Of a stretch of 64,000 bases of DNA, positions 39,401-48,400 are shown in pieces; positions within the stretch are counted from its first letter, which is position 1, and each line of letters starts with the position of its first letter. This DNA comes from Hormiphora californensis (Eukaryota > Animalia > Ctenophora): contig CM035350.1 in the NCBI GenBank assembly GCA_020137815.1, forward strand, positions 5,518,001 to 5,582,000, in the 5' to 3' direction. The notes beneath the pieces are model-generated. The model searched no databases. It had not been told where the DNA came from and saw nothing but the letters and a program-made list of their open reading frames with translations. A program made the translations under genes and the position numbers.

Positions 39401-42400
39401 CCTGCTTGTTCGATTGCAACACAGTTTTCATTAAAATAGTTTAGTAAATAACACCATTTCAATAAGTGCAACAATCAACATTAAATAGTACGCAACCTGG
39501 TATCTTTTCATTTATTATCTATATTATCACCTTCTCTCACACAATGTGTTTCCCTTTTAGATATCTCGGATTCTGGGAGAAATGCTAAAAATATTAAGTG
39601 GAAGTGATGATGAATATGCAAGACTACTAATGGACTTTGCTGCTCTCTGCTTCCCCTCCCACCCCACTCCCTCGGCAGCAATTCTCTTTAGAGGTGTCTG
39701 CTCCACACCTGACCTCCGAGAGCACACTCTAACCCTTTGGCGAAATGATTGTCTGAAGGAATACTCGACGCTTGAGGAGAGACTCCGGGCCCTCCTCTCA
39801 CTGTACTCACCTCCCGCAGAAGAAGTCTTTCTGAGGGCAGTTAGTACGATTTGTGCAGGGTGTTACCCAGTTAATGACCTCTCTCGACCAGTGTTCCTGA
39901 AACCCCTCACACACAGGACAGTCACTGCAACCCAGGCCTTGCAGCAATTCTCTCTAACACAAGACGTTGGGGGATCACATAGCCTACTACTCTCAAAGAG
40001 GGGCACTGGTACCCAGACAATCCGAGAGAACATGAAAAGAAAGAGGAGAGAGGCCCAGGCAGCCCAGCGAAGTACTCTGCTGAAAATGGTCCGGAACTAC
40101 CGTGTAGGAGAGTTACCTGATATTGAGATTACATTTCACGATCTAATTGGACCTTTAGTTTCCATCTCCAGTCTATCCGATGCAATGGCGTCAGTGACTC
40201 TCCTCTCCCTAGTAACTCATCATGAAAAACTTGACTGTAAAGATGCCCTCCTTTCTATCCTTCGTACAACCAACTCCAGCACCCTGGGTCGGTTTTGTGC
40301 GGAGCTCTCCCTGCAATGTGGATACATCCACCCAGACCTATCCGGGTTGTGCCTGAAACATGGTACAATCAACCTGGCTAGCCTGGCAGCAGAGGATGCC
40401 TTGGGGGCGGGGTGTGGCTCTTGGGAGGCCCTGGGTGAGGTGTATCGAGCAGCATCCGACTACAACTCCCTCCTGGCTATTGCCACTCACCACCAGGAGC
40501 ACTCCTCCCCGGACACCATTACGGGTCTGCGTCTCCTAGCTGAAAGGGATTACGAGAGAGCTTTGGAGTGGCTGCAGGGTGGCTCCTCCTCCCGTCTATC
40601 TGAGCATGTGGTGGAGTGTTTAGTGAATCTAGGCAGGTGGCCAACTGGGCAGCAGCAGCAGGAGGAGGATATAGTGGACAGTGGACCTGGAGATCTTCTT
40701 TTTGATGCCACACCTGCCAGCAAGGTGAGCTAACTAATACGGGATGGGCAGGACAGGGACTGGTAACGGAATGGTCTTTATAGTATTATGGGGCATGCTT
40801 TAGCGGGGCTTTAGCTACCAAGTTTGGGGTGCTTTATAAAGCTTGGTACCAGTAGCCCTTGAGCTAGTGCTACCATGGTACCAACAGTAATCTAAATTTG
40901 TCAAGTTTAGCAAAATAGTTGCGACGGTCTCCTGACTCCTTACCACCGTGGTTGGGGGCCAGTTATTAGATGGAGTTAGATTGCTTTATCCGAGACACCG
41001 CGTGACTTGTATATATGTAATAATTACATCATGCAGGGTTAGCTCGCTACCTGTCTCTAGTCGGCGTGAGAAAAGGGTTGATAACTTAACTAAAACTACT
41101 TCCTCATTACAAACATATATACCCCAGGTTGAAATGATATGTGGTTTGTCAATCGAACGAGTTTCTGGAGATACGTCATGTCCAGCTGCTCTTGATGCCT
41201 TCTTGGAGGGGTGGTGTGGAGCAGAGCTAGCCGTTCAGCGGACATCTCTCCTGCGGACATGTCAACTGTTGGCCGAGGTGTCCGGAGATACCATGCCTCC
41301 CGACCAGTGTACAGTGACCCCCTGCCCACAGTCCACACCCCCGCGTTGCTGGTGGTCCCTTATTCGGGCGAGGGAGAAATTAGGTAGGTGTTTGTTGAAA
41401 TAATGGAACACTAGGTATGGCTATTAGGGTGTGCTATTTCAAATTTTTTTCGACTAGGCCATTTAGTATCTAGCTAATGTGAAACTATGGACAATTCTCT
41501 ATCACATCAGCAAAACAGAATCGAGATAGTGTTTGTCAGTTACGTTGGCATCGCAATTTAAAAAGTGTAGTTTTTAACCGAAAAATGGTAAAAACAGGGA
41601 AATATGTGTGGTTTTCACCAGTTTTTGACATGTTCTTGATATCAACTTTTTATGTTCAGGATCGTGTTCAGCACCTCGAAACTGACAAGAATTGATATGC
41701 ATCATTAAATGATGCTAAAGTTCATTTTTGACCTAAAAATGTTCATTTTTGACAAAAATTGTTCATTTTTGACAAAAAATATTCATTTTGGACATGTTCT
41801 TAAATTTTGAGAGCTTTTTCATGAACGGGATCGTGTTCCGCAGGCCAAAATTAGTCGATTACAACCAAAATTTGCTTCCCACCAAGAAAAAACTAAAAAA
41901 ATTAAAATTCGTCCCCACAATTCTGCAAGTTGGTAAAAAAGGGAGAAAATTTTTTATTTTTGTTCATAAAGTGGATATCTGAAGACTCAAACTGAAAGTA
42001 ACAGTTGTATAAGTTGTCACGAGACGATTTATATGTGTGTTTTGTTCGAAATCACGCCCTAAAACAGACTTTTTGAAATGAATATGCCCATATATGGGCA
42101 TAGCTCGTGCCAACGTAATTGGGCCATGGTAGAGCCAAAACTTTGTGATAAAATGTTTTAGAATGATCGTAGGAGCTCATTTAACCCGATACCAAGTGAA
42201 ATTTTGAATTAATTTGGGCATTTGAAAAAATAGCACACCCAGCAAATCCATAGCGGTTCCCTCAATTTTTTGCCGACATAGCCATTGGCTATGTCGGCAA
42301 AAAATTGAGGGAACCGCTATGGATGAAATGCTATGCATATCATATTGACTTACTTGACTTAAGGCGAGTGGTATTCGAAAACGCTGTATGTGAATATAAG

Positions 42401-45400
42401 AGATCATGGAGTGGGGAGACGGACGCTAGGTCTAACGCCTAATCGGACTCTAAATATAATACTTTTTGCTCAAAATTTAGAGAGGACTCTATGTCTACCA
42501 AGTCTAAAACAGGGGGACTTTATGTCTACAAAGTCTAAAAATAACGGTAGTTTAAGCCTAAAATCGTAGATTGCGAGCGATCGTTTTCGGCCGTTAGGCT
42601 GGAAACGAGAGCTCGCTGTGGTCCCTAACCTGTCCAGAATGGTTAGGGCTGTTGTTTGGGGTCGAGGTTAGGGTATTGTTAGGGTTAGGTTTTAGACCTA
42701 GAGTCCTGGGACTTAACTCTTTGTCTAACGCCTGAGTATGGGGGACTCTATGTATACCAAGTCTAACACAGGGGGACTCTATGTCTAAAATTTTTTGCTA
42801 AGTCTAAAAAAACCGGACTTTAATGTTAGACTTAGAGTCCGTTTTTGACTTAGAGTCCGCGACTCCATAGGAGTGAGACACCCGGAAACGAAAGCTGATC
42901 ATTCTGGGATACATATACCGCGCGGCCCAAAAAAAACTAAGGGTACGTTGGGCTTCTTTTCTCCCAGAAGTTTAATTTCAATCACTCTGATATTTTGTCA
43001 CAATATTTGTATGGTTACTCATTCGAGGAATCCGGAGTTTCAAAACATAAAAGTGTGAAGTTCATGAATGAACCCAATTTCTCGTTTTTCGGGTTTTTCC
43101 AAGTTTTCTTATGGTTAAATTCGATTTTATTCTTAAAAATAGCAACCATGCATTAGAGGGGGGGGGGTCGGCCGATATTGGCCTTGAATATAAATAGTGG
43201 TACACACACTTACAATGTCAATAATAAATTAAACAAACGGGGTCAATAAATTATATAAATAAAAGATTTAGTCTATTTGGTAGATACTGTCATCCCGACC
43301 GCTGCTGCCTTCTGCCCTCAGTCGTCCGCGGTGCCCCCTGATGGAAATGGTGACGGAGCGGACCATGGCAAATGACAACCTTAGCCTCAGGTACCGGATA
43401 CACTGATCGTATGAATATCCTGTTTTAGTCGCCTTCTTCTCAGCCAATTGTTTCAAAGTCTTATTAAATTCCCTTCCAAGGCCCCCTGTAGTTGACATGA
43501 CCAGTGGTGTGAATGTTGACTTTTCCACCTCTAGGACACGGTGGAGGTAGGATGTTTTCTTCTCTCTCTCGTGTTTTTCATATGTTTTGGCGATGGTCTG
43601 GTTTGAGTTGGACGATATCCTTGGATTGAAAATTCTTACATCGAAATAGATATTGTCCATATCCGACCAAAAGCCGCGACTACTGATGTCAAGTCTGGCG
43701 CCATCGGCTGTTATAGTGCCAGCCGGAAGATTCACCCCTCTAACATTTAGGAGATGGGGTTCGATCTTAGTGTCGACACATACTTTATTCAGTTCGTGGC
43801 CAATGAAATCTCTCACGTTGTTGTGTCGGAAACATACAAAACCTCCGAGTTTACAGGATATGAGGTGATCGATGGTGTTTTCTTCCCCACATGCACAATG
43901 CTGAGGTAAGGCCTGTCCGACGAGAGGCAGGTTATAACGGGCTGACATGGCGTCGTGCCACTCCTGTCTGTTGAGGGTGAAGTTCAAAGATTGGAGAGGG
44001 AGACATGTTAACCAGGATGAGGCCCCCTTTTCCATGAGTAGGTCCAGGTTTCTGATTTCAGCTGTAGTCATCATGTTTTTGATCTCGTCGATTTTCTTCT
44101 GATGAATATCGTTCTTGGTTCGGTGGATGAGGGTTTTCTTCTCTGCTCGTTCCTTTTGGTTGATTTTGAATGTTTCCTGTTGAGCTAGGACTGCAACTGA
44201 GAGCTCTTCAGTAACAAACTTTGAGAAACTGTAGTCTGAGTCTGATGATATTTGAGGGTTGTCTACTCCTAGTCCTCCGAATCTTACAGGGAGGGCTGCA
44301 ACCAATCTCAAGGTTTCATTTACAACTGGCTGACCGGTTATCGCCGGGAGGAGCTTCTGATGAATTTTCTCCTCAATAGTGCCTAGTTGGTCCGAAATCC
44401 CAGGAGTGGTTCTCATGAGATAGCTCCAACGTTTTGATAGTCCGATGTTGTATGCAGTGTATGCAAGCTGAGGTTCGTTCAGGGCAATATCACAAATCTG
44501 ATCAATTTCACTCTCCCATTTCGCAACTTCGTTCCTCACAAACTCTGCCTGACCTTCCTCCGTACCAATGTATGAACCCAGGTAACGCTGGCCCTGAGAA
44601 GTGATGTTTACATCAGGGAACATGGATCGAGCAGCTTCTTCAAATTCTGGTTTCACAATCAGCCAGGATTTCCCTGGATTTGGGAGATAGCCATAACCAG
44701 GTCCATCTTGTTTAACTTTCTCCCACCAGGTTTTTACAGTACTGAGAGTGCCCCCGCCAAGGCCGTCGTCTGCGTAAAAGATTTGAGTCAATTTAGAGTC
44801 CTTATCCTCAACAGACCGTATAAGCGGCATTAGGCAGCAAGCGTACATATGCATAGCAGCAGTATCTCCCTGGGTTGTCCCTTCAGACGACTTCAAAACT
44901 TCATTGTTCTCGCCATCGCATAAAAATAAGTTCGCGGTTAGTCCATATGTATTTTGTAAATAAATCTTAAATTCAGGGCAAGTGTATTTAACGTTGTTTA
45001 AGGCAGCAATTCGATTTAGGGAGTTGAAAGCATTACTCGCATCAATTAACAATAAACATTCAGTACTCTCAAGATCAAACAAGTCTCTAGCAGCGTGAAC
45101 AGCAGCTTCAACGCCGCCTTCCAACCCTGCACACAGCTGGACGGGTGCAGTACACTCTATCAGGTCTGGTTTGAGAGCTTGGGTAATGACTTTTCCAGCC
45201 AGTCTCCTCAGAACTTCCCCTATTCCAATGGGCCTGATACCTGTTGGCCGTTTGCTCAGTGGAACCAAGCGAGATGCAACATAGGCTGATAAAAGTTTTG
45301 GATCTGTAGGTTCTGTTGCTAGTTTGAAGGCAAAGGTGGCAATAGCCTGCGCTAGCTCGGAAGATGCAGGACTGAGTTTTTTAGATAGCAGCATATGCTT

Positions 45401-48400
45401 CCATAGATCGGAGTCAGCCCCTGATGGTCCTCCTGATCCGGATAACATTTTCGCTGCCTTGGTTACTGCCCCAGCTGATATCTCAGAGAACATGCAATGT
45501 GTATTCGGGAGTGCTGGTCCTTGAAGAAGGGATGATGTCTCTGAACTAGGTGGGTGTTTCTTGATCAGTTCACCCACGACTTCCGGTGTGATAGGAACCG
45601 GTGCGACATCACTGTCCCGTATCGCTCTCAGTGCTTGACTCACTTTTCCACGTAGCATGAGTCTCGTAAATGATTTCAGGGCGTTTCTCGACTTGTCATC
45701 CTTGCTGGGTAGTCTGCTTTGGATTACACGCCCTTCTCGCAATAATAAATCAAAGTCTCCGTTCCGAAAAATCGTCAGCCTTCTCTCGATTGCAGCAATG
45801 TGATCTCGGGACTTGCTGTTTGCAGAAGGTTTCTGCAGAACGAGAGGGAAGAGAATCATGAGGAGCATAATAGCATATGTCTTACTCCCTCCGTTGTTGT
45901 TGAAGGAATTCAAAATATTGGCTGCTTCATGCACAAAGTCTTTTCCAGCCTTTCCAGAGGGAACCATAACGAGGTTTTGCCTCCAAAAAACTACCTCATT
46001 GTAAGCACGACATACATCTCGATGAAAGTCAGATTCGTAGTGCTCGTCTGGGTCATTAGTTTCTGGCGTTATTGAAGCGATGTGGTCCTCTAGTAGTTTG
46101 ACTAGTTTAGCTTTGTTGGTGTTGGATTTGAAGGGGACTCCATAATCCCGCAGCTCCTTTTTGATATCTTCTGCTGTCCGTTTTTTCATCACGCATAACC
46201 TCAAATTAATTTGTTTAAAAAAAATGCATGCATTAGAGTAAACAATAATAAATGGCAATCCGAGTTTTTATCAAAAATGAATCAAGTTTAGTTGGTGAAA
46301 TAAATTATTAAAAAACGGTCATTTTTACCAAACATCGATTTTAACCCGTTTTGACAAGAAATTGGTAAATTCAGGCGCTAAAAATTCGTACGGCCGTTAC
46401 ACTTGATCGATATTGATGTTAGCTAGAATTTCGGCTCTCTATCTAAAAATTCATTTTTACGACTGGAATGAATCCTAAATGAACTTAAACAAAAAAGGTA
46501 TTCCAAACCGGAATTTCACAGTCGCCTTTGGGTAACGATTTCCTTTCAAACGCGACTAATTTTAGGTCAATTGTACCACCACAAGAGACACAGTGGCCAC
46601 TTTTCCGACACTAGGTCTGGCCAAGTGACCCCTATTGGACCGCTAGCGTCATTACTAAGTGCCAATAAGCAGGTGTAACGGTCGCGTATCACGTATCACA
46701 TCTGCTAATTAGGACGGTATACCGATACAGCGTCCGTTAGAATGTAAGTTCTCTTGCTAACACGTCATAATTTGATGGGGATCACATGACCCAACCTAGG
46801 CTTGGCAAGCTGGTCACTGTGATTCTTGTGGTGATCCAATTAAGCTCAAACTGGTCGCGTTCGAAAGAAAATCGATAGCCAAACAAATTTGTAAAACTTT
46901 GGGACCAAAATATGGTCCCGTTTTGGCGTTCATTAAATGTTCATTCGGGCGAAAAAAATGAATTTTCATCCAGAGGGCTGAAACTCCGGAATCCTCGAAT
47001 GATTAACCATACAAATATTGTCACAAAATATCAGAGTGATTGAAATTAAATTTCTAGGAGAAAAGAAGGCCAACGTACCCTTAATTTTTTTTGGGCCGCG
47101 CGGTATCTATCAATGCTGATTGATGATTTGGTCATGCTGGGCCATGGAGCAGCTTTGGGTTTGGAAGTGGAAGGCACAAACAACCCGGGCGGGGAAATGA
47201 AAATTGCAATATCGATCAAAATGAAACTTTTCACATTGCTTAGAGAGCTTGTTATAAACTCCGCTTGACAACTTAATTAGTTCTGGCTCTAATACGCTTT
47301 TTACCTGACAAAATGTAATTTATTTTACAACTGACAAAACCCTATCCATCAGTCTGTTAGTTATTTAACTGAAAAACGCGTACAGGCGAAGATGTCATGC
47401 CGTTGAGGGTAGCCGCGACGAAGGCTTGTCTGAATCTGAATTGTGCTACAATTCTGCAAGTTGGTAAAATTAGCAAGAAAAAAAGGGAGAAAATTTTTTA
47501 TTTTTGTTCATAAAGTGGATATCTGAAGACTCAAACTGAAAGTAACAGTTGTATAAGTTGTCACGAGACGATTTATATGTGTGTTTTGTTCGAAATCACG
47601 CCCTAAAACAGACTTTTTGAAATGAATATGCCCATATATGGGCATAGCTCGTGCCAACGTAATTGGGCCATGGTAGAGCCAAAACTTTGTGATAAAATGT
47701 TTTAGAATGATCGTAGGAGCTCATTTAACCCGATACCAAGTGAAATTTTGAATTAATTTGGGCATTTGAAAAAATAGCACACCCAGCAAATCCATAGCGG
47801 TTCCCTCAATTTTTTGCCGACATAGCCATTGGCTATGTCGGCAAAAAATTGAGGGAACCGCTATGGATGAAATGCTATGCATATCATATTGACTTACTTG
47901 ACTTAAGGCGAGTGGTATTCGAAAACGCTGTATGTGAATATAAGAGATCATGGAGTGGGGAGACGGACGCTAGGTCTAACGCCTAATCGGACTCTAAATA
48001 TAATACTTTTTGCTCAAAATTTAGAGAGGACTCTATGTCTACCAAGTCTAAAACAGGGGGACTTTATGTCTACAAAGTCTAAAAATAACGGTAGTTTAAG
48101 CCTAAAATCGTAGATTGCGAGCGATCGTTTTCGGCCGTTAGGCTGGAAACGAGAGCTCGCTGTGGTCCCTAACCTGTCCAGAATGGTTAGGGCTGTTGTT
48201 TGGGGTCGAGGTTAGGGTATTGTTAGGGTTAGGTTTTAGACCTAGAGTCCTGGGACTTAACTCTTTGTCTAACGCCTGAGTATGGGGGACTCTATGTATA
48301 CCAAGTCTAACACAGGGGGACTCTATGTCTAAAATTTTTTGCTAAGTCTAAAAAAACCGGACTTTAATGTTAGACTTAGAGTCCGTTTTTGACTTAGAGT

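Follow-up and report, generated by a model that had tools for sequence, protein, structure and literature searches.

A retrotransposon headed by the host spliced leader in the ctenophore Hormiphora californensis

The element, its insertion site and its protein

The 64,000-nt stretch of contig CM035350.1 of the ctenophore Hormiphora californensis that was analysed here (GenBank assembly GCA_020137815.1, positions 5,518,001 to 5,582,000; hereafter the window) contains an intact, 3,068-nt-long retrotransposon lacking long terminal repeats (non-LTR retrotransposon). It occupies window positions 43159-46226, all its features lie on the minus strand, and its 5' end carries the 3' part of the host spliced leader (SL). 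The element is flanked by two identical 12-bp target-site duplications (TSDs) with the sequence CTCTAATGCATG, one on its 5' side (46227-46238) and one on its 3' side (43147-43158). The insertion interrupts a miniature inverted-repeat transposable element (MITE), portions of which are located at positions 42960-43146 on the 3' side and 46239-46420 on the 5' side of the retrotransposon. This host element, which is ~1 kb long and ends in terminal inverted repeats (TIRs), has one further copy 2.4 kb away in the window. Joining the flanks and removing one TSD copy restores the MITE empty site. Over its entire 381 bp, this sequence can be aligned gap-free with more than 20 further copies of the TIR element, to which it is 96-99.7% identical. 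Therefore, both ends of the insertion are exact. The 5' end at 46226, the location within a MITE, and the coordinates and letters given in a first-pass annotation of the window all hold. A terminal-repeat check of the insert detected no LTR or TIR of its own.

The whole leader in front of the open reading frame (ORF) is 37 nt long, as annotated before, and re-reading of the window letters resolved it into three parts. The first part is the 7 nt CATTTTT (46220-46226), which differ from positions 16-22 of the SL and are absent from the MITE empty site, and are thus foreign to both. The second part, TTTAAACAAATTAATTTGAG (46200-46219), corresponds to the 3'-terminal 20 nt of the host SL, which is 42 nt long. 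The third part, GTTATGCGTG (46190-46199), forms the first 10 nt of the element body and is the putative start of a trans-splice acceptor exon; it contains an out-of-frame upstream ATG at 46196. A single intact ORF of 973 amino acids plus stop codon follows (43268-46189), with the ATG at 46189 and the stop codon at 43268-43270. The 3' untranslated region (UTR; 43159-43267) has no poly(A) tail, and its last 9 nt are a run of C (43159-43167).

The encoded protein contains a reverse transcriptase (RT) domain at residues 313-512 (44654-45253), which matches Pfam RVT_1 with 37.4 bits against a cut-off of 29.6 and is the sole Pfam domain above cut-off in the 973-residue chain. The RT ADD motif (A473, D474, D475) is invariant in an alignment of 40 homologues. 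So are the residues of a CCHC knuckle (C765, C767, H775 and C779, spaced C-x-C-x7-H-x3-C) and of a restriction-like endonuclease (RLE) core (R788, H789, E810, P811, D834, D850 and K877), which together span positions 43559-43897. The N-terminus has a weak similarity to a helix-extended-helix motif (SAP/HeH-like, residues ~7-36, 46082-46171; E = 0.026, under the Pfam cut-off), and the AlphaFold2 model places helices at residues 6-15 and 26-39. In relatives, this region is occupied by a Cys-rich motif, by PHD fingers or by an OTU protease. More than 1,000 homologues were found, mostly in marine assemblies; they align over more than 90% of the length with ~40% identity, and the top ones are full-length. 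One homologue from Pleurobrachia bachei is 95% identical over the portion covered.

The AlphaFold2 model, calculated from the alignment of 40 homologues, has a mean predicted local distance difference test score (pLDDT) of 88.5 and a predicted template modelling score (pTM) of 0.83. The best matches of the model in a Foldseek search were R2 proteins (E = 3e-20 to 2e-15, ~890-1,100 alignment columns), and the similarity spans the whole protein through the C-terminus. LINE-1 ORF2p and group II intron RTs ranked behind the R2 proteins. A phmmer search of Protein Data Bank (PDB) sequences gave no R2 match, and the kinship to R2 surfaced only by fold. On the basis of the RT domain, the invariant CCHC and RLE residues and the R2-like predicted fold, the element is an RLE-type non-LTR retrotransposon of predicted R2-type architecture, and an RLE-type long interspersed nuclear element (LINE) is a known kind of element. 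Like other members of the R2/RLE group (CRE, NeSL, R4 and HERO clades), it has a single ORF in which the RT is followed by a CCHC motif and a PD-(D/E)xK-type endonuclease, generates TSDs and 5'-truncated copies, and has no LTR. In contrast to R2, the protein, which is too distant for detection by phmmer, has no N-terminal zinc-finger or Myb domain, and the SAP/HeH-like motif is located there instead. The previous assignment of the element to the CRE clade agrees with the RLE architecture and the R2-like fold, but not with the site specificity for SL genes: none of the three full-length copies of the family described below, and none of its 3' ends among the matches listed, lies at any of the 16 SL RNA gene loci of the genome. 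The CRE label is therefore unsupported. The HERO clade, which has been described as largely non-specific in insertion, is at least as likely and accounts for the dispersed insertions no worse than CRE.

The host spliced leader on copies of the family

The 20-mer TTTAAACAAATTAATTTGAG is identical (20/20) to the 3' end of the published SL of H. californensis, GAGTTTCAAACTTTTCAACACTACTTTAAACAAATTAATTTGAG, and the ending of ctenophore SL exons given in the first-pass annotation was correct. This leader is present on 56% of Iso-Seq reads of the species (Schultz et al. 2021; PMC8527503). The 20-mer occurs, with at most one mismatch, at 662 places in the 110.7-Mb genome of 45 contigs, and its reversed control at none. 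Among the first 30 places, 27 show the 22-nt sequence (G)TTTCAAACTTTTCAACACTAC, complete or for the most part, on their 5' side, most of the SL copies have a precise 5' end at SL position +1, and the sequences downstream of the 20-mer are unrelated.

Searches with the first 500-600 nt of the element identified only three copies genome-wide with more than 90% identity. These full-length copies are located at 5.56 Mb of contig C1 (the window copy), 0.52 Mb of C4 (L032, C4:516127) and 1.67 Mb of C7 (L033, C7:1670545). Over the 2,020 nt that could be compared, L032 and the window copy show 100% identity; L032 is headed by the entire 42-nt SL (42/42), from the +1 G of the SL gene to the last G of the exon, followed by GTTATGCGTGATG. 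L033 is 99.65% identical to the window copy (7 differences in 2,027 nt) and retains the last 13 nt of the SL (13/13), preceded by ATTTTTTTCAAGTG. The window copy retains the last 20 nt (20/20), preceded by CATTTTT. The SL part ends in ...TTTGAG in all three copies, and the junction GAG|GTTATGCG is common to them. The sequence past the junction is not that of the SL intron, since the element continues with GTTATGCGTGATG and the SL genes with GTAAGCTGAGTT. In the search with the 5' 600 nt, no copy carried sequence upstream of GTTATGCG other than the SL or junction nucleotides. We considered CATTTTTTTT... of the window copy and ...TTCAAGTG... of L033 as alternative SL variants, but each is unique in the genome; therefore, the odd 5' extensions are junction additions.

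If an SL-trans-spliced RNA is reverse-transcribed and the cDNA is completed to a variable extent at its 5' end, a single junction with different lengths of SL is expected, and three such lengths are observed. Because the full 42-nt SL and its 20-nt and 13-nt remnants stand on one junction, the template RNA of the family was very probably SL-trans-spliced, as judged from the genomic sequences. This was the first part of the mechanism put forward in the first-pass annotation, and comparison of the 5' junctions supports it: the SL remnants vary in length and all end at the same AG. Contamination of the assembly with cDNA is disfavoured as the source of the junction because of the TSD and the empty site.

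The 3'-terminal 400 nt of the element have ~28 further genomic matches with at least 85% identity, ~25 of them with at least 90% identity, and nine are 100% identical over ~400 nt. Nearly all of these 3' ends stop within a few bases of a common 3' terminus, and those among the matches listed are spread over eleven large contigs. The excess of ~28 further 3' ends over three full-length copies is the 5'-truncation profile of a very recently active LINE, and the window copy is a young member of a currently or very recently active family.

The motif ATTATTG precedes the 5' junction by 12-26 nt in each of the three full-length copies (window 46243-46249, L032 1460-1466, L033 1468-1474), with a background frequency of 8.6e-5 per base, and may reflect a target-site preference of the endonuclease. 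One metatranscriptome contig (run X2), 90-95% alike, fits the MITE flank plus the leader (window 46189-46361) and diverges beyond both positions. Outside the retrotransposon, the window contains an ORF of 383 amino acids on the plus strand (39582-40730), a segment of which matches positions 542-607 of the profile DNAPKcs_CC5 (DNA-PKcs CC5). The CC5-like segment recurs 40 kb upstream (C1:5517302-5517496), each time in an open frame of ~390 amino acids, and the ORF may represent either a fragment of a gene or a portion of a repeat.

Spliced leaders across the genome and in marine relatives

Sixteen of the genomic SL copies are SL RNA genes with a conserved upstream element (...CCATCAGCA), the 42-nt exon, and a structured intron between its GTAAGCTGAG start and an Sm-like site (CCTTTTGG). 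They are arranged in three divergent pairs with the genes ~535-612 bp apart (C5:6431347-6432001, C9:4528291-4528868 and C11:221863-222517), a single gene (C12:4023264) and a cluster of nine genes spaced by ~740 bp (C13:3181658-3195351); the SL-gene loci include L088, L089 and L091. The remaining copies, ~646 of the 662, are not SL genes, and the conserved upstream element is lacking from the retro-copies. A previous survey of the Hormiphora genome counted 718 leader sequences of 42-44 nt, which were treated as SL loci trapping Iso-Seq mappings (PMC8527503). The sequence counted there is the same and its copy number is similar, but according to our analysis only 16 copies carry the SL intron.

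Sixty sampled SL copies formed 35 similarity groups. Three of the copies are SL genes, and the rest belong to more than 30 repeat families and to single loci; nearly all of these 57 copies head repeat families or single ORF-bearing units. In most SL-headed families, an ORF1-like frame begins 10-60 nt, or ~200 nt, past the SL. Some of these frames carry PHD domains and others 2OG-oxygenase and GDSL-esterase domains; PHD and esterase domains occur in the ORF1s of CR1-type elements. We compared seven family groups in which the first 300 body nt differ by 10-42%. SL positions 6-22, which had not been used for selection of the copies, contained one mismatch in 629 pairwise comparisons. Therefore, the SL does not diverge along with the element. 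Reverse-transcribed trans-spliced elements explain most of the ~700 leader copies of Hormiphora.

The only same-strand tandem of SLs within 90 nt among the ~660 copies is at C2:7543001-7543033, where stacked leaders read ...CAAATTAATTTGAG ATATG CAAATTAATTTGAG. The locus looks like a re-mobilised SL-headed copy, with a new SL attached 5 nt ahead of a truncated SL already encoded in the DNA. Other SL copies form head-to-head palindromes with inverted bodies, for example ...CTCAAATTAATTTG...GAAAC|GTTTC...CAAATTAATTTGAG (L017/L018 at C1:3434329-3434395, L014, L023 and C7:4141605-4141661), which may be snap-back or twin-priming products; an Rfam search with the palindromes gave only sub-threshold matches to microRNA-like hairpins. 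A GC hairpin, GCCC-N3-5-GGGCAG, is located 20-45 nt past the SL in several SL-headed families otherwise without nucleotide similarity (L001, L004, L010, L012, L015, L021, L024, L027 and L063). Motifs of the type CTGATGA-stem-GAAAC, which resemble a minimal hammerhead, occur right after the SL at L005, L006, L014, L017 and L026. Their identification as hammerheads of Penelope-like elements was rejected, as Rfam reported no hammerhead at E <= 0.1 and only sub-threshold hairpins.

Relatives of the window element from other presumed hosts also begin with leaders. Among metagenome contigs, a profile scan detected 80 relatives, all of them distant, and no close relatives were found in the Joint Genome Institute (JGI) metagenomes. 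Five relatives with 38-45% amino-acid identity (L093, L094, L105, L106 and L153) carry SL-like but distinct leaders. These represent three other ctenophore-like leaders ending in TTTGAG (...TTTTAATACTTTCAACACTACTATATAACAAATAATTTGAG, ...CATAAATTAAATTTGAG and ...ACAAACGATATTTTGAG), for which no match was found in the literature searched. Each leader is directly followed by GT, with the start codon within 30 nt. Two relatives that are 47% identical share one leader version, and two that are 75% identical carry different leaders. The leader tracks the presumed host and not the element. L153 is a genomic copy, since 740 nt of unrelated DNA precede its leader. In every lineage of the RLE clade of the element, the element body starts with GT directly behind the leader, so that the DNA reads GAG|GT, similar to an SL donor. 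This applies to the window copy (46199-46198), to the five metagenome relatives and to L035, a sister lineage in the Hormiphora genome, with start codons 3-28 nt further on.

Mechanism, alternatives and comparison with known systems

Based on the genomic copies, a replication mechanism can be proposed, in which the element is probably an SL-trans-spliced RLE-type non-LTR retrotransposon that depends on the SL machinery of its host. The RNA of the family very probably received the 42-nt host SL by trans-splicing at an acceptor 10 nt upstream of the ATG (...GAG|GTTATGCGTGATG). Target-primed reverse transcription then copied the RNA including the SL. The cDNA of the window copy halted 20 nt from the 3' end of the SL, with 7 nt added at the junction, and in the sister copy L032 the entire SL was copied. 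Presumably, the 5' end of the family contains neither a promoter nor a ribozyme, and its capped, unit-length mRNA would be obtained from the host SL machinery. The source copy was probably SL-headed and transcribed by read-through, because every full-length copy terminates at the SL junction and no outron is retained in any of them. Trans-splicing would then act again on such a read-through transcript, either at the DNA-encoded SL or a short distance upstream of it. The first-pass annotation had suggested that the terminal AG of the copied SL serves again as the trans-splice acceptor, and we regard this step as tentative. The SL holds a single AG, which is formed by its last two letters. Therefore, re-use of the AG is compatible with the sequence but would leave no trace in the DNA, and DNA sequences cannot prove it.

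Several observations weigh against parts of this mechanism. Re-use of the AG is disfavoured by the SL end TTTGAG, since canonical 3' splice sites tend to avoid a G at position -3, and by the only stacked case, in which the new SL was joined through another AG and not through that of the DNA-encoded SL. The absence of a promoter is also debatable, as internal promoters of the initiator/downstream promoter element (Inr/DPE) type need only ~35 nt, part of which could lie in the SL or in the ORF. Furthermore, SL addition is deduced from DNA copies, and no RNA read or contig across the 5' junction was found among metatranscriptome contigs; environmental RNA-type marine runs from three studies contained pieces with at least 99% identity to the ORF, as short metatranscriptome contigs only. 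Finally, the sister lineage L035 (C4:19954-20853; 77% amino-acid identity) begins with a T-rich, 31-nt leader that is not an SL and ends in CTTGAG|GTCATG. A genome search found no SL-headed copy of this lineage. The L035 leader was also tested as a decayed SL and rejected, since its alignment is no better than those of shuffled sequences (p = 0.24). The L035 copy is inserted within another repeat and is the one complete copy of its lineage, further loci of which are at C6:7858457 and C1:9634453.

The alternative that survives best, although we consider it rather unlikely, is that the SL-headed copies are dead-end processed copies and that a conventional master with its own promoter or outron (...AG|GTTATGCG) drives the family. 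The L035 leader could be such an outron, the G at position -3 would make the SL end a weak acceptor, and the single direct tandem among ~660 SL copies shows how rare stacked SLs are. The master might be missing from the assembly, polymorphic or lost, and H. californensis is indeed highly heterozygous, with a single haplotype assembled (PMC8527503). However, the search with the 5' 600 nt gave only three copies with more than 90% identity, none of which extends upstream of GTTATGCG, and the same absence would be required for many other SL-headed families. Furthermore, at least one SL-headed copy has been mobilised again, as is evident from the stacked locus.

A second alternative, which appears improbable, is that the DNA-encoded SL is a heritable 5' UTR or initiator, with transcription starting at or near SL +1 and without fresh trans-splicing in each cycle. 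In some nematode SL genes, the SL sequence itself is a promoter element, and the precise 5' ends of most copies at SL +1 would fit such a role. An SL variant, ...CTTTTCGGCACTAC... (CGGCAC; ...TCGGCACTAC...), in which all changes are A to G, is a further point for this alternative, and against the re-use of the AG. The variant occurs at 16 places, which include L028, L073 and L085, and matches no SL gene of the 16 identified. In the three copies read, it is located at the head of one element clade, whose ORF1 combines 2OG-Fe(II) oxygenase and GDSL esterase domains, and the ORF1s under the variant are only 40.6% identical, suggesting that an SL encoded in the DNA may be passed on without replacement. 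However, the variant could equally derive from an unassembled SL gene or from recurrent adenosine-to-inosine (A-to-I) editing. The conserved upstream element of the SL genes (...CCATCAGCA) is lacking from the retro-copies. The occurrence of the local SL on more than 30 unrelated families and on relatives from other hosts requires trans-splicing, at the least when each lineage arose.

The other proposal of the first-pass annotation, that a master copy is located in an SL RNA gene directly behind the SL donor, uses the promoter of that gene and carried the SL exon elsewhere, is contradicted by this assembly and very improbable, even though the RLE elements CRE1/2, SLACS, CZAR and NeSL-1 target SL genes and GT always comes first after the SL in this RLE clade, as it does in the SL donor: all 16 SL genes read GAG|GTAAGCTGAG, and the element, which reads GTTATGCG, shares with them only the GT (GTAAGC at the start of the SL intron, GTTATG at the start of the element body). 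Among the 84 genomic sites with an SL followed by GT, 30 were read; only L032, which has no SL promoter in its upstream flank, runs into an element of the window family. None of the three full-length copies, and no 3' end among the matches listed, is located in or beside the SL RNA genes, and most other SL-headed families do not begin with GT and would need trans-splicing anyway.

The proposed SL-dependent mechanism differs from those of related elements. Unlike R2-type elements, the window family is dispersed and not confined to rDNA or SL genes, and its 5' end is the host SL rather than the product of a ribozyme similar to that of hepatitis delta virus (HDV) or an rRNA co-transcript. CRE1, CRE2, SLACS, CZAR and NeSL-1 likewise bear an RLE and are physically tied to SL sequence. 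However, these elements insert into SL RNA genes, whereas the RNA of the window family carries the SL to unrelated sites.

Stacked, truncated relict SLs are common in dinoflagellates, whose DinoSL has an internal AG. In contrast, the only AG of the Hormiphora SL is terminal, and there is one stacked case in the whole genome and none in the window element. DinoSL-tagged retrogenes and SL recycling have been reported, in which a DNA-encoded 5' SL is likewise the footprint of a reverse-transcribed trans-spliced mRNA; the copies there are host genes, whereas those of Hormiphora are autonomous retrotransposons of many families (PMC6050394, PMC5585692, PMC12014239). In Hydra, ~30% of the Iso-Seq reads of transposable elements carry an SL (PMC12220107), but this evidence is at the RNA level only, whereas that from Hormiphora consists of genomic copies. 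Six SL-containing transposable-element loci of Schistosoma mansoni were tentatively attributed to trans-splicing and reverse transcription, and according to the authors they are possibly assembly chimeras (PMC5832876). In contrast, the Hormiphora junctions are fixed by the TSD and the empty site, and there are hundreds of copies from more than 30 families. We found no description of SL-headed retrotransposons in ctenophores in the literature searched.

The ~700 reported spliced-leader loci of Hormiphora are re-interpreted by our results, since only 16 of the copies are SL genes. In ctenophores, the heads of retroelements confound gene models based on the SL as well as shared first exons. The DNA-encoded SL also provides a built-in marker of full-length retro-copies. 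Non-LTR retrotransposons lose their 5' ends in each cycle, and the known remedies are internal promoters, ribozymes and co-transcription with host genes. The window family, together with the hundreds of SL-headed copies of other families, points to a different route to a LINE 5' end, in which trans-splicing supplies the capped end that is then written back into the DNA. Tentatively, we speculate that LINE-like elements of many clades in ctenophores have abandoned 5' promoters and are carried along in host or read-through transcripts, and that SL trans-splicing both frees and caps their unit mRNAs at an acceptor that renews itself without a trace. This hypothesis of promoterless LINEs is directly testable with existing Iso-Seq data. 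If the promoterless, self-renewing reading is true, it would represent a third general solution to the 5'-end problem of LINEs.

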